From assembly GCA_002104945.1 (NCBI GenBank), contig MCFH01000078.1:124001-188000 (forward strand): 64,000 bases of DNA, written 5' to 3'. This DNA comes from Piromyces finnis finn (Eukaryota > Fungi > Neocallimastigomycota). Position numbers and translations under genes: made by a program. Positions 5,143 through 57,400 of this stretch are shown piece after piece. Under the pieces are notes generated by a model. That model ran no database searches. It was not told the DNA's origin and saw only the letters and a list, made by a program, of their open reading frames with translations. The stretch's first letter is position 1; each line of letters starts with the position of its first letter.

Positions 5143-5967
5143 TTAAACTTTTTCGACAACTGGGAATAAATTACTGTCATTTAAATTTTCTTCAACCTTT
5201 GGCTTAGAGTTGTAACTGTAAAGGTACCACATGATAGCACCGATAAAGACAGCACCACCAAGAATGTTTCCTATTGTAACTGGTAAAAGATTGTTGTAGA
5301 AGAACTTTCCCCAACTAGCATCAATACCAAGGAAAAGAGCAGTTGGAATGAAGAACATGTTAGCGACACTGTGCTCGAATCCACTAGTAACGAAAGCGAA
5401 AACTGGTAAGAAAAGACAAACGATCTTGGAGATAGCATCATCAGCGGCAGTAGCCATGAAAATAGCTAAACAAACAAGCATGTTACAAGAGATAGCACGA
5501 AGGAAGTTGTCACTCCAAGCGTTGTTAATCTTTGCCATACCAAGGTTTTTGGTGTATTCACCCCAGTTACCAGCAGTTAATGGGATATCAGCTAAGTAAA
5601 CTAAAAAGTAGGAAACAAGAAGAGAACCAATAAAGTTACCAACAAAACTGCTGACCCAGTTAATTATGACATGCTTGAATTTACATTTTTTATCAAGGAA
5701 AGCAATTGACATGAACATGTTGTTACCAGTGAATAATTCCATACCAGTGAAAACAATAATACAAAGACCGACTGGGAAAACACTACCAAGTAAGAACTTT
5801 TGGAAAGCAGGTGGAGCAGCACCAGCAGTGGTAATAGCAAAACAACCACCAAAGGCAAGGAAAACACCGGACATAATACCCTTTACAAATCCTTTAACTA
5901 ATGGAAGTTCGGACTTCTTTTTACCGGTATTTGAAATAGCTTCAGTAATCTTTTCTGGAGGTAACAT
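5143..5967 (-). CDS. Formate/nitrite transporter (FNT family, FocA/NirC/FdhC-like), intronless, 274 aa
   Basis: FNT signatures GMELFTGN, LRAISCNMLVCLA, GFEHSVANMF and VTIGNILGG; about six hydrophobic helices; higher GC than the flanks. Confidence 0.95.
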   Translation of the reverse strand: MLPPEKITEAISNTGKKKSELPLVKGFVKGIMSGVFLAFGGCFAITTAGAAPPAFQKFLLGSVFPVGLCIIVFTGMELFTGNNMFMSIAFLDKKCKFKHVIINWVSSFVGNFIGSLLVSYFLVYLADIPLTAGNWGEYTKNLGMAKINNAWSDNFLRAISCNMLVCLAIFMATAADDAISKIVCLFLPVFAFVTSGFEHSVANMFFIPTALFLGIDASWGKFFYNNLLPVTIGNILGGAVFIGAIMWYLYSYNSKPKVEENLNDSNLFPVVEKV

Positions 5968-23316: not shown

Positions 23317-26300
23317 ATGCATAAACGTTTGATACGGCTACTAGTTCGAGAAATCAGTAAAACAAAAGAAATTACCCCAGAATTCGTAGAAATTATTAAA
23401 AAACATGGAGAATTCACATTTAATGTTTTATTATTAGATGTTGAAGGAAAAAATGCTAAATCTTTAATTCAATTAATAAATGTTTGTCATTCAAAATTAA
23501 ATAACACAGAATATAGTAACGATTTAAAGCAAATATGTTCAAAAATTTATGAAAATTTAATTGAAAAGCATCATACTTTTATGAATCAAATTTGTAATTC
23601 TAAAGATAATGTATCTGAAAATGAAACAGAAGATAATATTAATTATATTATTCAAACAATTTATAAAATTAATGAATTTGAACTTGGAAGCAAAATCATT
23701 ACTCAAAATTTAAAAAATATATTTAAACTTTTCATTAAAATTTTCGAATATCTTCAACAATATTTATTCATTGATGAAACAAATATTACTTCCGAAAAAA
23801 TTCTTATTCTTCAACTTTCAAAAAGCATGACCATCTTAGAAAATACCTTAAAAACTCTTGTTGTCCTTTTCACTAAAAATCAAAAAATCATTAAAAAGGA
23901 AGCAGATGCTGTATTAAATAACACACAATATACTTCAGACATAAGTGTTATTGATAAGGAAACTTACCAACAATTATTAAAATATATGATTATGGCTGCT
24001 TATTCAAAAATTAGTGTTAATAATTGTAAATATTTATCAACCATGTGTTCAGTAATATTATTAGATTATATTAGCAATCCAAAACATTCAAGCTATTATA
24101 TTTTAAAATTATTATATCCAAAACTCTTAATGGAAAATAATGAATACGTATTAGAATCAATGGAAGAAATTTACAATGAATTAAATACTAGTAATGCCTT
24201 AAAGTATGTTGAAATTAATGAAAAGGATACTAATAACTTGAATTTCACAAATATATCTATGATTCGTGCTTTAATTTCAAATGCCAGAATCGAAACCCTT
24301 TTAACACCAATAAAATCTAGTGATGAAAATGACAAGCATACTCTCTTTTCTTATTGTTTAGATGAAACTAACTATTATTGTGAAAAGTCAATAGAAGCTT
24401 CAATGAAAATTGTTGCTTTTGAATCTATGAAAAAATGGATTGAAAAAACAATGGAATGCTATAAAATGGAGCAAATTACCAATAGCAGTAACATTAATCA
24501 ATATACTTCAAAATATATGTGCAATAAATTTATGCAATTCATATTAAATAATTGGAGTGATCCAGTTGACACAATTCAACAAAAAGTTGAAAATATCTTG
24601 GAAGTATTATTAAACTTAATTTCATTAAAATCAGAATGCAATGGTAACTCGGAATTCTATAATGAAATGATTTATAATATATATGATAAATTATTTAAAC
24701 TTGATTATTACAATAAAACTCGTTATGGTCTTTTATCTATTGTTGTTCCATTCACTGGTGTTGATCAATGTCTTTCTATTCAACCTGATATTATTTCACT
24801 TAGCATTCAAGTCTTAAGGTAATAGATAATAAATAAATAAATGAGTAACACCTTTAGCACTTAATACAATAAAATATTTATTTTAATAAATTCATTAAAA
24901 TAAATTATTTAGTATGATAAAATATTTTTTTAACATACTATTTTTTATGATATATATTTTATAGAATGGATACTATGGCTAGAATTGTCACTAATTTCAT
25001 TGGTGTTTTTTACGGTTTACAAATTAAGGATAAGAGTAATGAAGAAAAAAAGAAGGTAATTTTAAAAATAATTTAGTTGATAATATTATCAATTTTAATT
25101 TGTTTTCATAACTCAATAATAATAATAATCCATAATCAATAATCAATAATTTTTAATTATTTATATAAAAATAGATTTTTGATGCTTATTATTATAAACC
25201 TTTATGTGATGCTTTAACTAGTTCAGATCGACTTTTAAGAAAAAATGCTAATATTTATTTACTCACTTCTTTATTAAAATGTAATAAAGATGTTTTCGGT
25301 CAAACTATTGATAAATTAAAATCAGATGAATATAACAAAAATGAAAATTACCTTAGTGCAATTTTAGCTACAATAAAAATTGCAAACCATGTTATAGGAA
25401 ATAAGAATAAATCTGAAGAAGTTGAAGATGAAAAAAAATTATTTGGAGGAATTGATAAAGAATTATTATTACAATGTTTCAGTATGAATTCCTTAAACAT
25501 CCGTATTGATGCTTTCGGTTTAATTTGTGAAAATGCTAAAGAATTCGAATTCCCAACTAAAATTGAAATGGAATTATTCAGAGAATTCCTTCCATTAAAT
25601 ATGCATTGTGCCATTCCAGAATTCCGCCAAAAAATTGAATCTTACGCTAATAAATTCTTAAGTAGATTAAGAAATGGTATTCTTACCTCCTGGAAGGATA
25701 TTAAAAAAATCGAAAAGAAAAAAAGAGTTACAGACGATTTATTAGCAAAGAAAAATAAGTTAATGGAACGTATCGATGAAGCTGAACAATGGTTAAATGA
25801 ATTATTAGAATTCAGTATTCAATCTATTTATCCAGATGCCTCATATCAACGTGGTAGTATTGGTCTTCATTTAATAGAAATTCTTATTAATGTCTTTGGT
25901 ATTACTGAAATTAGTTTACCATCTGGATTTGATATTAGAAAATCAGCACTCACCAAAGAAATTTTCCCATTCAAATTACCAATTATTACTGAAAGAAATG
26001 TTTATTCTTTAATTGCTGCTATCAATATTCCATATGATACCACTAGACAATCCATTTTCAATATTTTCAATAAAACTGAACCAAATCAACCTTTACCAGG
26101 TATCGAATCAATAGAAAAGGTTGAAGAACTTATCTCTAATGTTTTATCAAAATTAAATTCACCAAGAGCTCAAGAAAATGATGGTGCTGCTTTATTAGGA
26201 AAAATATTGACTAAAAAATATATTAATCAATTAAATTGGGACGTTAAACTTATTTCAAACGATGAGATTTCTATTAATCAAAATGTTAAGGGAAAAGCCG

Positions 26301-29300
26301 TATTTAGTAAGTACCCTTTTTTTTCAAGATCCTAATTAAAAAAATAAATGATATTTAGAAATTATACATTGGTTATTAATGTAATATTCCTTTTTTTATA
26401 TACCAATAATTAATTAATTAGTTCGCTTTATTAGAAGAATTATTGCAATGATTGATGAACAAATCAAGATTGCTAAAAATAATTTACTCTATGCTTCCAA
26501 AAGATATCCAATGTTTGGTTTATTCAATTTCTTAAATGATTTCCTTACTACTCTTGATTACAATAAATACATAAAAGATCATTTGGAAGAATTAAGAGAA
26601 GTTCATAAAGAAATTTATGAACGTATTATTAGTGCTAATGAAGTAGTATTAGATATTATTCAAAATTCTTCTCCTGAAGGTCCAATGCCAGATGTTCAAG
26701 ATATTGGTGTAGCAATTGATGAAATTGTTAATGAATTTGATAAAAGTGTAGATGATGCTTCTTCCAAAGGCAAAAACTTTAATGTTACTTTGAATTGTTG
26801 TTGGAGAGTAATTAAGAGTACTAGGTAAATAGTTATTATACTACTTTAATTTTTTAATAATAAATTAAAAAAAAAAAAAAAAAAACATAGTATTAAATTA
26901 TTATTTTAAAAATAATATATACACAAAATGTAAAACACATTCAATAATATAATATATCAATACATCCTTTTAGTCAAGTTTTATCAACTCTTCTTACCAA
27001 GGCTCCAATTCAAAAAAGTGATGATGATAATGAATATATTCTTAGTTATGATCAATTAATTGAAGGTAGTAACTTGTATAGAAATTATTTAAGTACTATT
27101 AGACATTATGGAGCAATCATTGCTATCTATCCTGGCTACATTCAATTATGTAAAAAACTATTAAACTCATCTCAAGAAATTTTCTCAAGTTTACCACAAA
27201 AATGGCTTGAGGTATGATTAACATTAATTTCATTCTATTTATTAATTAAGCTATCTACTTATTTATAATACATGCCTAAATATGATAAATTTTTATACAT
27301 GTTTAAAAACTTTTAATATAATTAGGATTCTTTAAATACAATTAAAATATCAAATAAGATTTCAATTACTAGAAGATCTGCCGGTATGCCATTCTTAATT
27401 CTTGCTATTTTATTATCCGAACAAAATTCCAACAAGGTTCTTTTACCTCACGCTCTTTCTGTTTTAATTGATATTGCTCGTCAACCATTTGATACTGAAA
27501 CTTACAATGAAAAGTGTGATTTACCACAAGTTCATGCTATGAACATTTTAAGAAGTATTTTTAGAGAATCAAGATTAAGTGATGATATTTCAGCTTATGT
27601 TACCGATACAATGATTTTAACACTTGAAGGTTTTAAATCACCAGCGTAAGTAACCTTAATTTTTGATAATATTTTCAAAAGAAAAAAAAAATGTTTTTAT
27701 CTATTTTATTTTAATAAAAAAAAAAAAATATTGCTCTATTCATTAACAAAAGTCACATTACCTATTATATATATATATATATATGTAATATTATAGTTGG
27801 TCTATTCGTAATTGTGCTATGATGATGTTTACCACTATCTTACATAGAATCATTGGTTCTAAAAAGACTAGAGACGATTATAGTTCAGTTAACTTCATTA
27901 CTAGATCAGTTTTTGTCTCAAGATATCATAGTTTATATGTTTACTTATCAAAACTTTTAAATGAAGCATCAATCTTATTAGTATTTATCATTCAAATATA
28001 TAAAATATACAAAATTATAAATTATATATATTAATATACCAATTTTTTTTTATCCAAATAATAAATAGGAAAAAGATTCATCCCACGTTCAACAAGATTT
28101 ATTCTCTGTTTTAGTATTATTATCAAGATTACAACCTAATACTAAGAAAAGTGAAATTGAAACTGAAGATAAGGATTTAGAAAATGTCATTTCATCATTA
28201 CGTTCATTTGCCAAATGTTCCATTTATCAAGTTAGAGAAGCAGCTGCTCGTTCTCTCGTACCTATGGTATCCAACCATAATATTAATAAGTATTGTATTG
28301 ATTTAATTAAGGATTATTGGAATCTTTCAAATCAAAATGGTCTTCACGGTAGTATGATTCAAATGAAATATTTATTAAAGAGTCATCTTATTATTAGCTC
28401 CTACCCAATGAAAAAAGGTAATTTCTTTTTTTTTTTAATCCGATCCAATGTTTATTCAAAATAAGCGATTAATTATTAATTTAATTTGTGAAAATACTTT
28501 TTAATTTATTTTCAAATTCATTGTTAATATTATTACTACTATTATTTCCTATTAGAATTTGTCGATAATGTATTATCCTTAATCATAGAAAGAGTCAATT
28601 TAATGTCAAAGAATTACAATAAGTGTGAATTAACCAGAGCAGAATACATTAATTTATTAAATGAAATATTATTTAATGAAGAATGGATTAACGAAAGTAT
28701 TTCCTCTCAAGACAATGGTAACAATGAAGAAAATAAGGATAATAAGGATGATGAAGAAATTAAAAACTATATTCGCTTACAATGTACTCATTACAGAAAA
28801 ATTGTATTTGATAAAATCAAAAACTTGTTATTTAATGAATATGAATATGCTCAAGTATGTATACGAATCTTTAGTAGATATCAAAGAGGAATCGAATTGT
28901 ATCAATTAAACAATAGTATTAATAAATTTATTCATTATAATATTTATAATACATTAATAAATAGATTATGGGCACTTGGTATTTAAGAGAACATTGTACA
29001 AAGATTATCATGAAGGCTCTTATGTCCTACCAAGATTTAATTTGCACTTCTGAAAATGTTATTGAAAAATTGATTAAGGATCCACAATTTGAAGTTCGTC
29101 AATACACCCTTCAAACCTTAATGAACTATCTCAATGAAGCTTCTCAATCAGACTATCAAAGAAACACATTATTAGAAAACTCTTTAAAGCAAATTATTGA
29201 TGAAATTATTAAATTAGAAGATGATAAGCATGAATGTTTAAGCTTAAAGATTAAGATTATTCCAAAATTATTAAATAATTCTCTTTTCACTTATGATCTC

Positions 29301-32642: not shown

Positions 32643-33738
32643 ATGACTTACTCAAATTATGATACTATACCCGATGAAATCTTAATCAGGATTTTTTCTT
32701 TCATAACTAATGATAATTTAAATGATATTTTTAACTCTTTATTAGTCTCAAAGAGGTATTCATCTTCTAATATAATAATATAATTTTTTTTTACTTCTAT
32801 TTATAAAAAAATAATGAATTTTACTAATAATTTTTTTTAAAAAAATAATATATATATTATACATTTAAAATAGATGGAATAAATTAGCTACATTTGCTTT
32901 ATATAACTCTTTACATTTCCATAATATGAATCAACGATCAAATTTCTTCAGAGGATTATTAACAAATAATGAAGATCAATATTATAATGAAAAGAAAGAT
33001 AAATATCTCGATATATCATTACTTGAACGTGAATTCTTTTTTAATGAAAAAGTAAACCAGCAAATAGAAAATGAAATGGAAGTTGTTGATGATAGTGAAA
33101 TTACTATCAATGATTATCCAATTCCAATGAAATATGTAAACTATGTTAAAAGTATTAATTTCGGTCTTTCTCCAGATGAAAACAGTGATGCTAATGAAGA
33201 TGGTTCATTTAACAATAACTTTGAATGGCGTCAACATTGTGTTAATTCTTCTCTTAATATTATTTCTATCTATTGTCCAAATATTATTTCATTAAATCTT
33301 TCTGGTTGTCAATACTATGATTATGTCTTGAGTGAATTTTTAGAAACCAGTAAAAATTTAATGTATTTAGATGTTTCATACTCTAGTATTAAACAAATGG
33401 GATTATTATCTATTCTTGAAGCCGTTAGTCGTTCAAACAATCCAATTCCACTTAGAGAAATTAATTTAAGTGGTATTTTCAGATTCTGGCGTCTCTACCG
33501 TGAAGCTCGTTTCTTACCTAATTTAATTAAGTATGCTAAAGATCTTAGAAAAATTGTTATTCTCGACTGTCCTGATATTATGGATGAAATAATAGAAGAA
33601 TGTAAATCTATTAGAGACAATATTACTATTGTCTATGAAACAAAGACACCTATTAATGAAATGTATATGAAAGACTATTCCGATGTAAAAAATGATAGTA
33701 GTTTAACTCTTTCCATAAATAATGAAATATATGTTTAA
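32643..33738 (+). CDS. F-box / leucine-rich-repeat protein (2 exons)
   Basis: Exon 1 32643-32755 (MTYSNYDTIPDEILIRIFSFI...LLVSKR, an F-box) splices to exon 2 32874-33738 (WNKLA...; cysteine-containing LRRs CPNIISLNLSGC, LMYLDVSYS, LREINLSG, LRKIVILDCP). Confidence 0.88.
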
Positions 33739-36420: not shown

Positions 36421-37869
36421 AATTTCTTTTTTTTTTTTTTACAGATAGTCTTAATAATATTCTAATAAATATATTATTATATTATTTTATATTAATAATA
36501 ATATTATTAATGCTACACACTATTTCTATTTTTTTTTTTAATTCGTTTTCTCCTATGAATAGTAATGTATGTGGATTCGTTTCCACATTTAAGCTATGGG
36601 TTATTTTTTTATTAATAATTAATAAAATAATATCCTTTTTATAAAGTTTTTTTTAAGCATTATTCCTAAAAGAATTTTCTTGTAGACGACTACATTGTTA
36701 ATGCCATTTTCACAATAATCGTAATAGTAAAATTATCCTAGTTAAAGTTCCCAGAAAAACAAACAAATCACTCTGATAAGGCCTTACTATGAAAAAAGGA
36801 TATGATGATGAACACTAATTCAAGGAATTTTTTACTAATTTCAAAGGAAAACCTTACCTATTTAAATTATATATAAAAATAGTATAAATTATATTTATTA
36901 TATATTATAATATATTATTAAATAATATTCTTATCAATTGATTATAATAAATTTTATAATGTATTATGTAGTCCAATAGGAATATAAACAAATTAATATA
37001 TTAACATCTAAAATTTCAATTATATATTGTATATTACAATATATTACATATATTAAATTACCATATATTATTTAATAGATTAATAAAAAGGATAATAATC
37101 AAAATAATATAAACCAAAGTAAACTATAATTTTAGTAGTTTTAAGCGAAAAAAGTTAGCATTGAGGGTTAGGGATATTTACAATGATAATAAAATTCTAA
37201 TTTTATTTTTGTTAACTAATTCAATTTAATATATTATGTTAATATATTAAAATATATAGTTTTGTTGTACTAAAAAGCTTAAAAAAAAAAAGTATATAAA
37301 AAAGAAAAAATTCTGTGTGGTAGGATTTTTTTTGCGTTAATATATAAATAATAACATTTTATAGTAGATAGTAAAAGTTTATATTACCTTGAACTATATA
37401 AACCTTTATAGTATAAAAAGCATAGGATTATAATATTTTTCACTAGAAATATTATATATAGACAAAAAAGAATAGTAACACGACAATAAGAATAAATATT
37501 TTTTTAGTAAAATATTCATATATACCAATTTAAAGTGAGTAAACTATTTTCGTAGAATAAAAAGGACAGAAATATAAAATAAATATAAAATAATAATAGA
37601 ATAAAAAAAAAAAAAAGTTAAATATTAGGAAAAAAAGAATAATTTTTTATATAATAATAAATAACAATACCATATATAATAGATTTATATCTAATAACAA
37701 TTCTTTTTATTATTCTATTTATAATATAATTCAAATAATAGAAACAAAACAAAATTAAAAAAGAATTTAAAAACGTACAACAAATAGAATTTTATACATC
37801 TATTAAAAAAAATAACAACAACTTTAAATAGTTTTTACTTAGAAATTAAATATATAAAATAATAACAAA

Positions 37870-40152
37870 ATGGCTAACAAAAGTTCAATCGATCGTATTA
37901 GAGCTATCTACCAACATTTATTAACTAAACAACTTAATAATTGTGGTGATGAATGCTGTGGTAATATTAATGTTGAAAAATGGATTAAAGATAACTTTAC
38001 TCCATATTTAGGTGACAGTTCTTTCTTAACTAATAAACCAACTGAAGCTACTAAAAAAATTTGGGAATACTGTGAACAATTATTAAAGGAAGAAATCAAG
38101 AGTAACGGATGTCTCGATGTTGATGCTTCTAAACCATCAACTATTACTTCTCATGCTCCAGGTTACATTATCAAGGATTTAGAAAAAATTGTTGGTTTAC
38201 AAACTGATGCTCCATTAAAAAGAGCTATTAAACCATTCGGTGGTATTAAGATTGTTAGAAATGCTTTAAAGGCTTACAATAGAAAACTTGATGAAAGTGT
38301 AGAAACTATCTTCAGATACAGAAAAACTCATAACGATGGTGTCTTTGATATTTACACTCCAGAAATGAGAAAGGCTCGTTCCAATGCTATTATCACTGGT
38401 TTACCAGATGGTTATGGTCGTGGTAGAATTATTGGTGATTACAGACGTGTTGCCTTATATGGTGTTGACTACTTAATTAAGGACAAAGAAAACGATAAAT
38501 TAAAGATCGGTGGTATTATGAGTGAATCTAACATGCGTGATATTGAAGAACTTGCTGAACAAATTAAGGCTTTAAAGAGTTTAAAGCAAATGGCAATGTC
38601 ATATGGATGTGATATTTCTAAGCCAGCTACTACTGCTCAAGAAGCTATTCAATGGACATACTTTGGTTATCTTGCTAGTGTTAAGGATCAAGATGGTGCT
38701 GCTATGTCAATGGGTCGTCTTGATTCCTTCTTTGATGTTTACATCGAAAGAGATATGGAAAAGGGTATCTTAAATGAAGAACAAGCTCAAGAATTAATTG
38801 ATCACTTTATTATCAAGTTACGTTTAGTCAGACACTTACGTACTCCAGAATACAATGACTTATTTGCTGGTGATCCAACCTGGGTTACTATGGTTGTTGG
38901 TGGTATTAGTAATGATTCAAGCAAACCATTTGTTACTAAGACTTCATACCGTATCTTAAATACTTTATACAACCTTGGTCCAGCTCCAGAACCAAATATT
39001 ACTGTTTTATGGAACGAAAAGCTCCCAATTCAATGGAAGAACTTCTGTACAAAGGTTTCTATTGATACTTCTTCTATTCAATATGAAAACGATAATTTAA
39101 TGAACCCAATTTATGGTGATGATTATGCTATTGCTTGTTGTGTCTCTTGTATGAGAGTTGGTAAGGATATGCAATTCTTTGGTGCTAGATGTAACTTAGC
39201 TAAGCTTATGCTCTACGTTCTTAACCATGGTTATGATGAAAGAACTGGTAAACAAGTTGGTCCAGACTTTGGTGAAGTTCCAGAAGGTCCAATTTCCTTT
39301 GACTGGATGTGGAAAACTTATGACAAGGCTATGGACTGGTTAGCTGAATTATACGTTAACACCATGAATGCTATTCACTATTCTCATGATCGTCACTGCT
39401 ATGAAGCTATTCAAATGGCTTTACATGATACCAAGATTCGTCGTTTAATGGCTTTCGGTATTGCTGGTTTATCTGTTGTTGCTGATTCATTCTCAGCTAT
39501 TAAATATGCTAAGGTTACTCCAATTCGTGATCCAAAGACCGGTCTTACTGTTGACTTCAAGATCGAAGGTGACTTCCCAAAATTCGGTAATGACGATGAC
39601 AGAGTTGATTACTTTGCTAAGACTATCCCAGAAATTTTCATTGAAAAATTAAAGAAATATCCAGCTTACAGAAATGCTCAACATACCTTATCTGTCTTAA
39701 CTATTACTTCAAATGTTGTATACGGTAAAAAGACAGGTTCTACTCCAGATGGTCGTAAGGCTGGTGAAGCATTTGCTCCAGGTTGTAACCCAATGCACGG
39801 TAGAGAAACCTCTGGTGCTGTTGCCTCATTAAATTCCGTTTCTAAGGTTAACTACAATTCATGCTTTGATGGTATATCAAACACTTTCACCCTTGTTCCA
39901 TCAGTTTTAGGTAAGATTAGTGAAGAAAGAGTACAAAACTTGACTGGTCTTTTAGATGGTTACTTCTGCCGTGGTGGTTTCCACTTAAACGTTAATGTAT
40001 TAAATAAGGCTACTTTAGAAGATGCTATGGTACATCCAGAAAACTATCCAAACTTAACCATTCGTGTTTCTGGTTATGCTGTTCATTTCATTAGACTTAC
40101 TCCACAACAACAAAGAGAAGTTATTGCTCGTACCTTCCATGATACCATGTAA
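37870..40152 (+). CDS. pflB: Pyruvate formate-lyase (formate C-acetyltransferase, glycyl-radical enzyme), intronless, 760 aa, with an N-terminal PTS2-like motif
   Basis: Catalytic AIACCVS (Cys-Cys) and C-terminal glycyl-radical TIRVSGYAV; also [42 protein letters not shown] and [11 protein letters not shown]. Confidence 0.97.
37894..37920 (+). other. Predicted peroxisomal targeting signal type 2 (R-I-x5-H-L = RIRAIYQHL, residues 9-17 of PFL)
   Basis: Exact match to the PTS2 consensus (R/K)(L/V/I/Q)x5(H/Q)(L/A), with a hydrophobic residue at position 5, lying N-terminal to the start of PFL core homology. Confidence 0.65.
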
Positions 40153-48427: not shown

Positions 48428-51400
48428 TTAAACCAATATAAAGAAAAGGAATATTATATTTAATGTAAAAAGTGTAGTAGTGAGGAGGGATGGATAAAGA
48501 TAATGGAAAGAGGCAGCACTAATATTACATTTCTCCGGATTTTCTTCGCTCTCTTCACATTCAGCATAACCCATTTTTTCAATTGAACAAATTTTTAAAT
48601 CTTTAGTTTCATGATCTAACTGAACGAAATTGTTAATACAAACTAAATTAAAATCGGCTTTCTTTTCCTCGGCATTATAGGTACAATTTGTATAAACGCC
48701 AACTACTGAATCAAGGAAATGACGGCGTTGAAGAACAGCAGTTGAATTGTTATTATTAATAATGGCAGAAAGTGCACTTTGAATTTCTTCAGGATATTCT
48801 TTTGTTAAAGCTACTGGGAAGTTTACAACAACCTTCTTGTTGAAATAACAATGACGAGCCATAACGTGAGTAAGTCGACCGTTAGATTCACAGTAGTAAT
48901 ATTGATTTTCAATGAAATAATATTGACCATGGGCACAATAATAACGACTACATTCTGTAGGTTCTAATTCTTCTGAATCATATATACAATTATATATTTC
49001 TCCAGTTTGGGTTAAGATATATTCTGAATTCGTTATTAATTTACATTCTTCACCTGTCATTTCTTTTTTCTTTTGGCAATGATACATTTCTTCATCTATG
49101 GTATAGTAATATCCAAGAGCTGCTTTTTTTCCCAAGGTAAAGGTGATAATATTATCAGAACTCTTTTCAATTTTATAAATATATTTGGCGTCAGGAGAGG
49201 TAGATATTAAAGCATACCCCGAATTTTCAGGAATCTTCCACTCATTATTATTATAACGAAGTAAAAGTTTGGCTTCTTCATCATAATAATAGCTATCATT
49301 CTCAGGTTCATACACCTTACAAATTGATTTTTCACAACCGTATATTAAAATATTGTCTATTTTCTTTCTGAAATATTGAATAGTACTATTTGTATAACGA
49401 CTTATTAAGTGATATCCGGTAGTTTCAATTCTTTCGGCCTTATTAATACTCATAGAGTATAAATATTTACCATATCCATAAATATTTTTTGTGATGCTTG
49501 TTGCCTTAAAACATTCTCCGGTTTCATGATTTTTGATATCTTTACGAACCACTGCTAATTCCCCCTTATATGTAATACAGAATTCGCGATCATTCATATC
49601 GGCATTTGGTGTACATTTATTATTTTTAAAAATACAAATGATGTCCTTATCGTATGCAAATTTATAACCATTATAATCTGTATTGTAGACAAATATACGT
49701 TTATTGGCATCAGTAAAATAAGTTTGAGTAGTGGGTGTATCCAAAATATGACAACTACTACCATTACAACTGTATAATTTTACATTTTCATCATTATAAG
49801 AAGTAATCTCTTTATCCTTTACAATAATATTCTTTTTGGTGTTAATAAAGTAGTTACCAGCTTCAACAAATTGGAGAACACTACCTTTATCCAAGAGATA
49901 TATATTAGATCCCACTGCGAAATAATTATCGGAATAATCATCTGTTACTTCCACACAATTAGTGATTGTCGTGGTACTTTTGTAGGTGGCAATTTTACTA
50001 TCAATAACATTAGGTTTCACTACCACGTTATCAGTGGCGAAATAGAAAACAGAACGTGTTTCATCGGTGCAAATATTACCAGCTTCTAAATTGGTAGTTG
50101 CTGATTTTTTAATAGCATATGCTTGAGTGATATAACATTTTCTATTATCATATTCGCATATTGGAATAGCATCAATTTCAGCAGTGGTAAGAGCATTACA
50201 TTTACCTAAAACACAACGAATAATACCATAAGATTCATTACTATCTCTGGATGAAATTTTAATTTTTTCATTATGTGGTGTTTGTAATTCTTCATTTTTT
50301 TGGAATTCATTATTATTATCAGTAATATTATCTATTGATAATTCTTTATTGACATGACTAGAATTACTTTTTAGATTGTAGAACTCTTTTTCTACTTCAT
50401 TTTCACGCTTTTTGTTTGAATCTGATATGTTTCGGAGAGCACTTCGGAAAATACCATTGGTAATACTAATGTATTTACATTTACCATTATCTTTACAACT
50501 AATTAAAACACTTGGATTGTTGGAAATATAGAAACCAGTATTTGATTCTTCTATATCGCAATTTATTGTATTACCATTTTCTGTACAATTAATTAAACCA
50601 TTTGAATTTTCACTAGAATCAGCATTATTATAATAATTAACTGAAGGAATAATCTCTACACATAAACTACTGGATGTACATTGAATTAAGCGTTCCTTAT
50701 TATATGTTAAATAATATCCTACCTTTCCTTTTACTTCTTTACATCCTTTTTGTTTGGAACATTCAATAAGTGGATAAAAGTCCCTATTTTCACCAGCATT
50801 TACATATATGATCTTTTTTTGTGAACTAATTTCAGTAAAACTACAACTGTTTTGACCATTGCAATAAATTATTCCTGCACCATCATGAGCTAAATAGAAA
50901 CCTGTCGTCACTGTTTTTGTAGCACAAACATTATTGGAGCATTGTATTAAACTGTTCTTGTCTGAATCATAACCATTATTTTCATAGTATGAAGTTACTT
51001 TAGATTGTTCAACTCTACATTTTGTACCTTTATTTTCACATTTTATTAAGGAGGCATGCTTCGATCTACCAGCTAAATTACTGGTTATGACATATCCAGT
51101 AACATCAGCTTGTGAAAGGTGCTTATTCTCGTTACAGAAAAGTGCCTCTTTATTTTCAGAATTATATAAGTAGGTATAAGGAGTACATTCTGGTCGTATT
51201 ATACATTCCATGTTAGTAGAATCACAATCGTATACTGTTGCATTCTCTTCATTTTTATCTGTTTCTTTCACTAATTTCCCATTTTTATCAATAACCACAA
51301 CACCACTTTGATAGAAACGATTAATGGTATATTGTGTAATTTTAAATAGAATTAACATATCCTTTGTAATTCCTGGGAAGTTACCGGCTAGAATGAATGA

Positions 51401-54400
51401 ATAGGTATAGTAATTCTCTGTATTAGTAGTATATATTGCTGTAGAATTCTTTTGAGGATAGAATAATAATTTATTTTCTTTGTAACAGTAATTACCACCA
51501 ACAGCGTCCTCATCCTTCTTTGGACAATTGCCTTTTTCTGCAATACATATGCCATTGACAGTACCACACTTTATCACAGGATTTTCTGGATCACCAGCAT
51601 TAACATAGTAACCAATATCAACTTTGCGAGTTTCACATCCAGTTTCTTCATTACAAATAATAGTTTGGTTGATTGCTTGATTGTAACCAGAGTTAAGATA
51701 ATAACCTTGGGAGGTGAAATCTCGTTTTAATAAGCATGCTGAAGTATTACATACAATTAAGCCATATAGTTCATCTTCATTCTTACCCAAATAATATGTT
51801 GGTCCCTTAGAAGGAGTTATTTTTTCACAAAAATGATTTGAACAGGATATAACAGCATTTACAAGACTATCAGTTTTTTCAGCATTTACGTAATATTCGA
51901 CAACTGTAGATGGCAGGTCAATACGAATAATTTTGCAACCGTCAATGTTAGTACATTGAATTAATTGATGGTTATCTTTTGCATAATTGGAATTAAGATA
52001 ATATCCAATCACATTTCTATATAATTCTGTACAAGTGATTGCTGTGGTAGTTTCATTTTCCTTACTAGAACATTCAATTATACTATTTTTATTTAAATCG
52101 CCGGCGTTTATATAGTATTCATTACTATTCAAAGTAGGTGATGAAATAGAAACTTGACAACCATTATTTTTACTACATTTAATTAATGGATAATCCTTTT
52201 TATTACTACCATAATTTACATAAACATCCTTAGCTTGAGCATTTTGTATATTACAGGTTACTGTATTAGATGAGTAGGAACATTGAATTAAAGTATCATT
52301 TAAATGATTAGGAAGATAGTTACCAGAATTAACAAAAAACTGTGATAACTTTGAGTCAGTCACGGTGATAGTGGAAAGAATGCAACCCTTTTCTTTATCA
52401 CAAATAATTAATGGAAGTGGCGTGTTATTTTCTAGATCAACAGAACTGTTCAGGTAAACATCACCATCGTGACCATTAATAATATCACAAATTATTTTTG
52501 CTTGTACACTTTTACAACGAATAAGGTTATTTACCAATGGATCATCCTTATTATTTATGGAATCATAGTTAACAAAATATGCAAAACCTTTAATATCTTT
52601 ACTTAATGATAAAATTTCACAAGGTTTACCCTCACGGCATTGAATTAAATCACCTATATCAGAAGAATTAATATAGATACCATTATCTTGCCCATCACCA
52701 AGTTCACATTTTATCATTTTTCCATTATTACTACATATAATTAAATCCTTAATATGTTCAATTTCATGTGGATTTTTAGTAAGATCACTAGCATTTAAAT
52801 AAATTTCATTTCTGGTGGTTAATGCAAAACTATTTCTAGCTTTACATCCATTTTGTTCGGTACAATAAATGATTTGAGAATTATTGAAAGCATTAATATA
52901 AACATCATTATTAACGGTTGGATATATTTCACATTTATCACTACATTGAATAATAGTATCTTTAAGAAGAACAGACTCGGTATGCCCAGCATTAACATAA
53001 TAAATATAATTATTAATATCTGATGTCACTGATACTTCCTTACAGCTCTCTCCTTTTTGACACAAAATAATGGGTTTATTATTTTTTGTAGCTTCGTAGG
53101 CTGCGTTCAAGTAAACATCGTCGTTTTGTGCAGATTCTACTTTACAATCAATAATAGAATTGTTATTGGTACATTTAATTAAATCGTCTTTTAATATTTT
53201 ATCATTGGTTTCATCACTATTAACAAAGTATTGTGGTTTACTAATAATGGCTGTACTAATAGTTAATTCACAAATACCATTTAAACATCTAATTAAATGG
53301 TTTTGAGTATCAGCAGTGGATAAATAATTAGCATTTAGATAGATATGACAACCTGTTTTAAATTCATTTTTTATAATTACGCATTGATTAGCTTTAGAAC
53401 ATTTGATGAGACTCATATTAGTAGTGTCACCACCATTGATATAATACTCAGAAAAAGTATCAGTTGGATTTGTAGCAGCAGCAAGACAACCTTCTTGTTT
53501 TGTACATCTAATAATTTGAGTAGCATTTGCAGCATTTAAATAAATTTGTTTATCAGAAGCTTTAGTCGTGTCTTGAGATGTTGTACAAATTGCAGTTTTG
53601 TTCGATTTGATTTCGCATTGTATTAAAGAATCAGCAAGTTTTTCTGTTTTTCCACCATTAATATAATATTCATTTTTACCTTCAATACTATTATTATTTG
53701 AATATGCATGACAGCCATTATCTTTTGAACAACGAATAAGATAATTTATTTTATCGTAATTTATTGTATCGTAGTTTTTATTTAAAAAGAAGGTTTCATG
53801 AACTTTGATTCCATCAATTATATTGGAAATATCTTTTGTAACACATGAAACAGTTGAAGGATTTGAGCACTCAATTAAAGTATTTACAAGAGATTTAGAG
53901 TCATAAGCACCAGCATTAACATAATATTCAAAAGAATTAGATGAAACTGTATTCGCAGTTGAAAGACATTTTCCTTCAGCACATATAATTAATTGGTTAT
54001 TGTCAGTGCTTTTCTCATTAGTAGTAGTTTTCAAATTGGCATTCAAATAGACATCATTAGCATGTCCATCAACTTCTTTGCATGTTTCTTCACACTTGAT
54101 TAAGAGTTTAATATATGTATTAGTATTATCTGACTTTAGACTTATGGTATCTCTTTCATTGTTGGTGGATGTATTTGCTGTTTCCGCATTAATATAGAAA
54201 ATTGGATTATGACTACTACCAATACCACCATAGGAAGTACATTTTGTATCATAACAATGAATCAATGCTTTATTGTAACTATTAATATATATATTATTAA
54301 CAGCAGCTGTAGTAACAAATTCAACATTAGCTCTTAAGGTAACAGAATTCTTTTCCTTTCCAGATTGAGGTGAAGAGACAGAATCAGTGAATGAAACTTT

Positions 54401-57400
54401 AATAATAGCGTCTGTAAGATCAGTCGAATCACCATGAACATAATGCTCAATAATATTTTTATTTGGATTCTTATTACTATAAGGAACACATCCATTAGCA
54501 GAACATTTTATAAGATAATTAATATTGTCATGGTTATTATAGTTTTTATTAATATAGAAAATTTCTTTATCATCATTATTAATTTTTTCGGTAATATCTT
54601 CAACTGTACACTGGGAGGTGTTGCAATATATCATTCCTTCAACTAATTTATTTTCATCACTTGCTCCAGCATTATTATAATATTCTTTTGTACTTGAACT
54701 TTTACCATTAATGGTTGTACATATTCCATCATAGCATCCAATAAGGTAATTATTATCCACAGGTTGATTACCATTTAAATATACGTAATTTTCACCGCTT
54801 GATTCGATTGTACAAGCTCCTCCAGATGATAAACATTTTATTAAAAGATTTTTATAAGGTTCTGTAATGGTAGCACCACCATTAACATAATATACATTGC
54901 TTTCCTTCCTTTCTTTTATACTGGTGTCAATATCACTTGTATTGCATTTATATTCACTACAAATAATTAAACGGTTTGTTGTGTCCCCATAATTATTAGT
55001 AGTTACGGATGAATCTATATAATTTGAATTTATAAAAACATCATAGTCCTTAATTTCTGTTCCATATTCAACGCAATTACCGCTTCCTGAGCATTTAATT
55101 AAAAGACCTTTATAACTCACATTTTCACTTTCATTATTTCCAGAACCATTAATGAAAAATGCTGATACATTTGAATTTCCTAAAGGACCATTAAATGCTT
55201 CACATGTATTACTTCCATAGCATCGTATCAAATTGCCATTATAACTGTTAATATAAATATCATTTTCTTTTGGTGTGTTGAATAATGTACACTTACTAAA
55301 AGTATCATCATCAATACTTACATTATTATTTGCGTCAATTGATTTAATTTTACAAGAAATAATTGATGCACTAAAGTTAGATTCTAATGGTGCTCCATGA
55401 ACATAATATTCAATTGTATTTTCAATAGCATTAGTATTTGAATAAGTATTACAAGTATTAGAAGAAGAACAATGAATAAGATAGTTCATGTCCTTATCTG
55501 TACCTTTACCATAGTTAGCATTAATGTAAAATACATCTTGTGACGTACTTGCTCCAACTGTTACAGTTTCAGCAACACATGATATTTTTGATATTTCTGA
55601 ATTATACTTACATAAAATTAATGGATACGATTCATTACTACTATTTTCAGTATAGATATTAGAATTAACATAATATTCATTATCGTTAGCTGTAGCTGAA
55701 CTTTTCTGTATCTCACATTTACTATTATTACATATAATTAAATGATTTGTACTATCAGTTGGACCAGTGTTTTCTGAAGAGTTACTATTGAAATTACCAT
55801 TAAGATATATATAATTAAGACCGCCGTCTGTAGGAGTGCAAGCCCCACTATTTCTACATTGAATTAAAAGATTAGAGTAAGTTTCAGATGTTGTAGTCGA
55901 TCCATTAATAAAATATTTATTTCCAGTATTTTCTTCAACAGAAATATTTTTTGCTTTACATTCATTATCTGCACAAATAATTAAACGATTTTCAGCATCG
56001 CCACTTAAAGAATTTTCTTTATAATTAGCATTAATAAACACATCATTGTCTTTAATTAAATCATTATTATCATCTGTATTATATAAGTAGCAATCATTTT
56101 TAGAATCACATTTAATTAAACAGCCTTTATAACTAGATTTTGAAGTATCAGTACCTGCATTGATATAGAATCCTGGTATATCATCCGTTCCATTACCTTT
56201 AATGGATTTACAAGCATTATTGTAACATTGGATAATATTTTTATTATTAAAACTATTAAGATAAATATCACCTTCAGATGGATTTATTAATTCTACATTA
56301 ATATTACTTTTTTCACTCCTTTTTTCCGAGGTGGTATCCTTAATTGTTACTTTGATAACTGCTTTTTGTAAACTACCATTATTGGGAGCACCATGAATAT
56401 ACCATTCTGTGCCGGTTTTTAAAGAAGTACTAGCATATGGAACGCAACCATTATCAATATTACCAACTTTACTACATTTGATTAAATAATTAGTAGCGTC
56501 TAATTCATCAGTTAATCCATAGTTTTCATTTTTAAAAAATACTTCTGTAATTTTATTTCCATCAACTACAGTAATGAGATTTTTTGTTTGACAACCATAT
56601 GAATTACATTCAATTAGTGAATCTTCTAATTTTATAGAAGTACCAGCATTAACATAATATTTATTCTCATTTTCACTTTCTTTTGGTGATTGAATAATAT
56701 TACATGTGATGGATGGAGATGTTCCAGTACATTTTAATAAAGTACTTGGAGTTTTAGCACCAGTAGTTATAACTCCAGCAGTTTCATTTAATAAAAAATA
56801 TCCATATGTAGGTACACAATTTTCTTTTGAACAAGTATAAACGGCAAGTTCTTGAGATTCAGATACTTCAGACGCTTCAACTAATATATTACCTGATTCA
56901 ATTTGAATAAGTGATAAAATTTTTTCATTGGTTTCCAATTCTAAGTTTTCATTCTCTGATGTATATTTGTATAATTTAAGTTTGCCTTCAGTTTCTATGA
57001 CATAATACTTTTCATTCTCGCTTACTATATATTTGGTATAAATATTTTATTATTTTAAAAATAAGTTTTCAAATTAATATTTTATATGATAGAATTAATT
57101 TAACAATTAAAATAATAATATTCATAATTTATAATATATTAATAAAATTAAATAATCTTATAAATATTGATATAAATATTTCATTTATATTTTATTTGTG
57201 AATGTTACTATTTTCTTTAAAAAACAAATTGAATCAATTATAATAAATTGTGTTTTGTATATATATTATATTATATTAAATTTTAATATATAAATTTTAT
57301 AATACCTTTAAGATTTTCAAAATAGAATACATTTGAAGCTGCTCTAATAAAAATTGATGCTTCTAATGAGATCTCAGTAAACTTATTATTAGCTGGTGCT

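Follow-up and report, generated by a model that had tools for sequence, protein, structure and literature searches.

The question raised by this locus is where in the cell a particular pyruvate formate-lyase (PFL) of an anaerobic gut fungus works. The window, i.e., the whole stretch of DNA that was analysed, covers 64,000 nucleotides (nt) of Piromyces finnis (contig MCFH01000078.1, positions 124,001 to 188,000). It contains the gene of a 760-residue PFL paralog, and the N-terminal extension of this protein carries a nonapeptide, RIRAIYQHL, of the type 2 signal for peroxisomal targeting (PTS2). The motif is conserved among orthologs, no downstream start codon would remove it, and PEX7, the receptor that imports PTS2 cargo, is encoded in the same genome. 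For these reasons it is probable that the nonapeptide is a functional PTS2, which would direct this paralog, in a PEX7-dependent manner, to a peroxisome-type organelle. A broader proposal is made more tentatively, i.e., that gut fungi possibly keep a peroxisome-derived organelle with a working glycyl-radical PFL, so that pyruvate would be cleaved at a third site in addition to the cytosol and the hydrogenosome.

The open reading frame (ORF) gave an uninterrupted 760-residue translation. Its GC content was 0.353, against 0.215 for the whole AT-rich window. By Pfam search, the PFL-like domain (PF02901) was found at residues 35-619 (E 2e-206) and the Gly_radical domain (PF01228) at residues 635-741 (E 2.1e-36). 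Among solved structures, E. coli PflB (PDB 1h16) was matched at E 1.5e-283, with residues 31-760 of the query aligned to 21-759 of the chain. PflB scored 946 bits versus 177 bits for the next family, glycerol dehydratase. Two recent structures named 'formate acetyltransferase', PDB 38la_A and 38lb_A (687 and 739 residues), were matched at nearly the PflB level (E 1e-266 and 5e-256, respectively). In an alignment of 40 sequences, R440, W338 and F332 were invariant beside the catalytic Cys423-Cys424 pair and the radical Gly735. Because both domains, the Cys-Cys pair, the radical Gly and the other invariant columns are present, the protein looks catalytically fully competent. The original prediction, which was made from the letters of the window, had described an intact paralog with conserved Cys-Cys and Gly radical sites, and the open 760-codon frame with all its catalytic residues bears this out.

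The nonapeptide occupies residues 9-17 of the protein, i.e., it lies within the first 30-40 residues and ahead of the enzyme body, which starts at about residue 31. It fits the strict PTS2 form R-[LI]-x5-H-L as well as the looser form [RK]-[LVIQ]-x2-[LVIHQ]-x2-[HQ]-[LAF]. The strict form is the pattern of stringent PTS2 screens in anaerobic amoebae (PMC8887013). The near-N-terminal PTS2 match noted earlier was thus recovered. The earlier quotation of the N-terminus gave the motif correctly and left out residues 25-31 (CGDECCG), which precede the start of bacterial similarity. A second correction is that the N-terminus of PflB itself includes about 20 residues ahead of the shared region. The extension is only about 10 residues longer than that of E. 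coli PflB, but it is about 27 residues longer than the N-terminus of the 733-residue gut-fungal PFLs.

The frequency of the motif by chance was estimated from the amino-acid composition of the window ORFs, with 25 start positions per N-terminus. By this estimate, about 1e-4 of N-termini would contain the strict motif, against about 1e-3 for the looser Petriv-type motif. Neither form was found in the first 45 residues of the 119 other PFL homologues (0/119). The structure was predicted by AlphaFold2 with the 40-sequence alignment (pTM 0.86). The enzyme body was confident from about residue 31, and residues 1-30 were modelled at pLDDT <50, as a helix at residues 3-23 followed by coil. The low-confidence helix, nowhere placed on the enzyme body, is weakly suggestive of an appended signal. 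The linker that follows contains at least one Cys in five of the six distinct orthologs, at shifting positions. In plant and mammalian PTS2 proteins, a Cys lies beside the cleavage site of DEG15/TYSND1. It is speculative, by analogy, that the linker Cys of the PFL recalls this cleavage-site Cys.

The window protein belongs to a 90%-identity cluster of 59 sequences, which includes Neocallimastix californiae/lanati, a second N. lanati copy, Anaeromyces robustus and environmental gut fungi. Orthologs in Neocallimastix and Anaeromyces were 92-95% identical to it. The motif R-I-[RK]-A-I-Y-Q-H-L was found at residues 9-17 in six of six distinct orthologs, with R11K as the sole change, and both N. 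lanati duplicates retain it. The flanks were much more variable, i.e., identity among the six sequences was 29-86% at residues 2-8 and 29-71% at residues 18-31. The original prediction had asked for the motif to be checked in orthologs, and it is conserved in at least three genera, between diverging flanks. Variable sites made up 1/9 of the motif and 18/21 of the flanks (Fisher p = 2e-4).

Selection was measured as pN/pS, from Nei-Gojobori counts summed over the six distinct ortholog sequences. The ratio was 0.62 at residues 2-8, 0.037 at residues 9-17, 0.66 at residues 18-31 and 0.077 in the body (residues 32-760). The nonapeptide is thus held as tightly as the enzyme body, and its flanks change almost freely. 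The synonymous divergence inside the nonapeptide was ordinary (pS 0.42), therefore it is the peptide that is constrained, and a constraint at the level of DNA or RNA was ruled out. Such a pattern of substitutions is the signature of a short linear motif in an otherwise unconstrained extension.

No ATG was found in the 300 nt upstream of the start codon at position 37870. Downstream, no further Met occurs in frame until about residue 175, which is inside the fold and offers no usable later start. An in-frame stop lies upstream of the ATG in the window. Every ortholog has an in-frame stop 2-15 codons upstream, together with an A-rich context before the ATG. The ATG at 37870 is the only start that gives the whole enzyme. 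Because no other in-frame Met occurs before about residue 175 and a stop lies in frame upstream, the extension must be translated. A downstream start, which had been named as a possible objection, was thus set aside, and a wrong start codon was rejected. A pseudogene was also rejected, on the intact frame, the catalytic residues and the purifying selection.

Four sequencing runs of the organism, whose RNA type was guessed, contained 100% of the sampled words of positions 37835-37965 and 74-84% of those of 37600-38600. These shares fit transcripts that start between those points and include the ATG. Among JGI contigs of 2.5-3 kb, many contain the complete ORF, preceded by a leader of 136-593 nt. 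None of them has a poly(A) tail, hence they give no cDNA proof. One such contig (3039 nt, L002) has a 263-nt leader without two upstream ATGs that are present in the A. robustus genome (L001) at 176 and 246 nt before the start. This difference could be a spliced intron of the 5' untranslated region (UTR) or a strain difference.

On the basis of the N-terminus, three groups of gut-fungal PFLs can be told apart, with 733 residues, about 800 residues and 760 residues, respectively. The 733-residue forms begin directly at the conserved core without an extension. The forms of about 800 residues were taken as hydrogenosomal; their presequence begins MESLTL, is 65-80 residues long and contains much Ser, Thr, Ala and Lys. 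Cytosolic and hydrogenosomal PFLs of Piromyces sp. E2 and Neocallimastix were reportedly described by Akhmanova et al. in 1999, Gelius-Dietrich and Henze in 2004, and Boxma et al. in 2004. The earlier picture of a cytosolic and a hydrogenosomal paralog matches the N-termini of the homologues. PFL activity of gut fungi is known from hydrogenosomes (review PMC9026988). The 760-residue form is 75-77% identical to the 733-residue forms and 67-73% to those of about 800 residues, with no difference in the catalytic residues.

In a maximum-likelihood tree, all gut-fungal PFLs formed one clade (support 100/98). The 760-residue group formed its own clade (100/100, stem 0.18), sister to the other two groups together (100/99), and its terminal branches of 0.02-0.03 were among the shortest of the tree. 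From the clade support, the stem length and the short terminal branches, the 760-residue form is evidently an old, slowly evolving paralog and no recent oddity. The label 'divergent', which had been given to it, does not hold, because the group is the slowest-evolving of the three. Nearest to the gut-fungal clade are the PFLs of two other early-diverging fungi, Catenaria and Gonapodya, and no PTS2 motif was found in them. Among the gut-fungal groups there is one PFL paralog for each predicted destination. An environmental PFL of 730 residues without an extension (P0011) grouped with the long-presequence hydrogenosomal clade (98/99) and not with the 733-residue forms. It may be a fourth paralog class or a derivative that lacks the presequence.

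The receptor was searched for in the same genome. PEX7 (ORX60867.1) lies on MCFH01000001.1 and the PFL on MCFH01000078.1, both of the P. finnis assembly GCA_002104945.1, and the check for PEX7 that had been suggested was thus answered with a gene. The path to it started from a motif search for DWNKY, which led to a PEX7-like transcript, then to a 49-residue piece and to a 1456-nt contig (L013) with an ORF of 320 residues. With the 49-residue fragment as query, multi-repeat WD40 designs dominated the matches among solved structures, and Pex7 was the best single stretch. The full ORF of L013 best matched yeast Pex7 (3w15_A, E 2e-72, residues 7-309), well above generic WD40 proteins. The sequence used in this comparison was the environmental copy, which is 97% identical to ORX60867.1 of P. 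finnis.

The 90% cluster of PEX7 contains P. finnis (with the UniRef name Peroxin-7), N. californiae/lanati (two copies), A. robustus and Piromyces sp. E2, and the protein is >90% conserved across them; PEX7 is present in all gut fungi sequenced. Its next relatives are from aerobic chytrids, at 66-69% identity. To our knowledge, PEX7 has no role besides PTS2 import. Because PEX7 is retained and PTS2 import is the sole role known to us, PTS2 cargo should exist in gut fungi. In the supplement of PMC5168858, transcripts resembling PEX5 (several WxxxF motifs and TPR), PEX13 (SH3), a RING peroxin and an AAA peroxin were recognized by reading. Most 'PEX7' entries in the TCDB table of the same paper were rejected as generic WD40 or E2 proteins. 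In P. finnis, PEX7 (L019:6001-8194, plus strand) is placed head-to-head with a gene of 346 residues (L019:2308-4281, minus strand) that has no Pfam match on record. Among the window ORFs of at least 120 residues, neither a PFL-activating enzyme nor PEX11 was found near the PFL.

The PFL gene keeps its place in the genome. The gene order Trm732/THADA-like, F-box/leucine-rich repeat (LRR), PFL is shared by the window and the loci of Anaeromyces and N. lanati, and because of this shared order the PFL genes are orthologous by position. The remaining Neocallimastix loci that were retrieved extend upstream just as far as the F-box gene. The next gene after the PFL in Neocallimastix is an RWD/Impact gene. 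N. lanati holds the whole Trm732-F-box-PFL block twice, which points to segmental duplication. Its second PFL copy (L012:10001-15150, P0126) was annotated with 1156 residues. This is probably a gene-model fusion with downstream sequence, because the first 2283 nt are a normal complete ORF with its own stop codon.

Features of the PFL locus and its surroundings in the window.
Feature	Position	Strand	Basis
PFL paralog coding sequence, complete, intronless, 760 residues, stop codon included	37870..40152	+	ORF list, Pfam, PflB match, orthologs
N-terminal extension, residues 1-31, not in 733-residue gut-fungal PFLs	37870..37962	+	Comparison of N-termini; AlphaFold2
PTS2-type nonapeptide RIRAIYQHL, residues 9-17	37894..37920	+	Translation; ortholog conservation; pN/pS; Fisher test
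Variable, acidic, Cys-containing linker, residues 23-31, from helix to enzyme body	37936..37962	+	pN/pS; predicted coil; orthologs
Catalytic Cys423-Cys424 pair	39136..39141	+	Translation check; invariant alignment columns
Glycyl-radical Gly735 within RVSGYAV	40072..40074	+	Translation check; invariant alignment column; Pfam Gly_radical 635-741
In-frame TAA, five codons 5' of the ATG	37855..37857	+	Sequence check
Trm732/THADA-like gene, upstream neighbour	25484-26828	+	Conserved gene order
F-box/LRR gene, upstream neighbour	32926-33738	+	Conserved gene order
Formate/nitrite transporter gene	5143-5967	-	Pfam PF01226
Giant ORF	48428-56938	-	

The proposed course of targeting is as follows. The enzyme would be synthesised in the cytosol, and its amphipathic N-terminal helix (about residues 3-23) would expose R9, I10, I13, H16 and L17 on one face. 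PEX7 and a co-receptor would bind this face, and the folded PFL would pass the PEX13/PEX14 docking machinery into a peroxisome-derived organelle. An activating enzyme would set the glycyl radical on Gly735, either inside the organelle or before import, and pyruvate and CoA would be converted to acetyl-CoA and formate inside it. The Cys-containing linker (residues 23-31) may be the site where a protease of the DEG15/TYSND1 type removes the signal. Binding, import, processing and activity inside the organelle are steps that we infer.

Several points weigh against a peroxisomal destination. The sixth position of the nonapeptide is Tyr in every ortholog, which is outside the set [LSGAK] that the extended PTS2 consensus of Petriv et al. 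(2004) reportedly has at this position. The 'x' positions are nearly invariant and K/Q20-Q21-L22 is conserved too, which is more than PTS2 recognition needs. The evolutionary sampling is shallow, as the 92-95% identity of the orthologs shows, and the RNA evidence is indirect, i.e., word shares in runs of guessed type. Peroxisomes have never been demonstrated in Neocallimastigomycota, and the one paper found to raise the matter calls it unclear whether gut fungi have peroxisomes at all (PMC5168858). The peptide features among these points would suit a cytosolic enzyme, in which the conserved helix docks the activating enzyme, AdhE or another partner, or has a regulatory role, and the PTS2 match is coincidental. 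All nine positions are kept and not just the five that would face PEX7, and the Tyr is unusual for a PTS2. In bacterial PFLs, too, the conserved core is preceded by about 20 N-terminal residues, and in the iNlan20 paper DeepLoc placed two N. lanati PFLs, of unspecified paralog identity, in the cytoplasm. However, a strict motif at the canonical position would occur by chance in about one of 10,000 N-termini, and the helix was not confidently packed on the enzyme (pLDDT <50). The closest paralogs function without the extension, and the retention of a strongly constrained PEX7 in this genome implies PTS2 cargo. A cytosolic destination is considered unlikely on this balance.

The extension could also be read as a short hydrogenosomal, i.e., mitochondrial-type, presequence or as a dual-targeting signal, which would make the protein a second hydrogenosomal PFL. 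In favour of this, the helix has an amphipathic character with a net positive charge (K4, R9, R11 and K20 against D8), and gut-fungal PFL activity is indeed known in hydrogenosomes (PMC9026988). However, the helix keeps an acidic residue, D/E8, among the orthologs, and the linker contains others (D27 and E28 in the window protein; a conserved D-D in most orthologs). Acidic residues are atypical of mitochondrial-type presequences. The hydrogenosomal paralog has quite another presequence, which is 65-80 residues long with many Ser, Thr, Ala and Lys residues, and the forms of 760 and about 800 residues are separate clades. With the conserved D/E8, the acidic linker and no similarity to MESLTL-type presequences, the extension lacks the marks of a mitochondrial or hydrogenosomal presequence. 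The original remark that it is unlike a mitochondrial-type presequence agrees with this, and a hydrogenosomal reading is quite improbable. It is hardly credible that the finding is an artefact, whether through a misplaced start codon, a pseudogene or a copy that is not transcribed. The 760 codons are open with all catalytic residues, and the pN/pS of the body is 0.077. There is no alternative start, and in-frame stops lie upstream in every ortholog. The gene order from Trm732 through F-box to PFL is kept across genera, the probable RNA runs contain the start region, and many JGI contigs hold the full ORF with leaders.

The enzyme family, the signal type and the receptor are each known; the novelty of a PTS2-dependent peroxisomal PFL would lie in bringing them together and in the compartment that follows from this. 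In the literature, no paper was found that ties PFL to PTS2, or gut fungi to peroxins, peroxisomes or anaerobic peroxisomes, and gut fungi are unmentioned in Zarsky and Tachezy 2015. Present metabolic models assign the pyruvate metabolism of gut fungi to just two compartments; in iNlan20, the curated model of N. lanati, the only compartments are cytosol, hydrogenosome and extracellular space. With the conserved PEX7 and a dedicated PFL that bears a conserved PTS2, there is a concrete pair of receptor and cargo with which the question of gut-fungal peroxisomes can be approached. Anaerobic peroxisomes have been described only from Archamoebae (PMC8887013, PMC8629394). If the reading is true, they would be extended from Archamoebae to Fungi, where they would be the first. 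Radical chemistry would take place inside a peroxisome, a compartment undescribed for PFL in any organism. For the engineering of these lignocellulose degraders, the models would gain an extra organelle and a branch of acetyl-CoA and formate flux. Organelle fractions of Neocallimastix are said to have reacted with antibodies to the peroxisomal SKL signal (Marvin-Sikkema et al. 1993). A peroxisomal PFL, if true, might help to explain these old reactions.

Two other genes of the window are mentioned here. An intact formate/nitrite transporter of 274 residues, FocA-like (PF01226, E 2.9e-82), is encoded on this contig at a distance of about 32 kb from the PFL. Any compartment with PFL would have a natural partner in a formate channel. 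The giant ORF, of 2836 residues, has no significant Pfam domain.

Compared with the known gut-fungal PFLs, the paralog of the window shares the enzyme family, the fungal PFL clade and the catalytic residues. It differs in its separate sister clade and in the 31-residue extension with a PTS2-type nonapeptide. With E. coli PflB it shares the aligned residues 31-760, in which the Cys-Cys pair and the radical Gly are conserved. The N-terminal 20 residues of the bacterial enzyme are unrelated to the extension, and the bacterium offers no organellar context.

Classical PTS2 cargo imported by PEX7 includes the yeast thiolase Fox3/Pot1 (RLQSIKDHL) and, in plants, peroxisomal malate dehydrogenase and citrate synthase (R-[LI]-x5-H-L). 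The PFL resembles this cargo in the nonapeptide pattern, the near-N-terminal position, the predicted helix and the PEX7 of its genome. It differs in being an oxygen-labile glycyl-radical enzyme, not one of beta-oxidation or the glyoxylate cycle, in the Tyr at position 6, and in being a candidate named from sequence. In the glycosomes of kinetoplastids, core enzymes of energy metabolism are housed in a peroxisome-derived organelle through a gained PTS1 or PTS2. In both cases an enzyme of energy metabolism would have been moved by gaining a peroxisomal targeting signal. In gut fungi, by contrast, one fermentative paralog is implicated so far, and the cytosolic and hydrogenosomal copies remain.

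The closest parallel in lifestyle is found in the Archamoebae, i.e., Mastigamoeba balamuthi, Pelomyxa schiedti and Entamoeba histolytica, which have anaerobic peroxisomes (PMC8887013, PMC8629394). Like them, gut fungi are anaerobes that retain peroxins, with predicted matrix proteins outside the classical oxidative set. PFL is not among the cargo reported for archamoebal peroxisomes (PMC8887013, PMC8629394), and for pyruvate Pelomyxa uses PFO/PNO, which carry no targeting signal (PMC8887013). Gut fungi differ from the Archamoebae in belonging to another eukaryotic supergroup, the Fungi, and whereas Entamoeba has lost PEX7 (PMC8887013, PMC8629394), gut fungi retain it.

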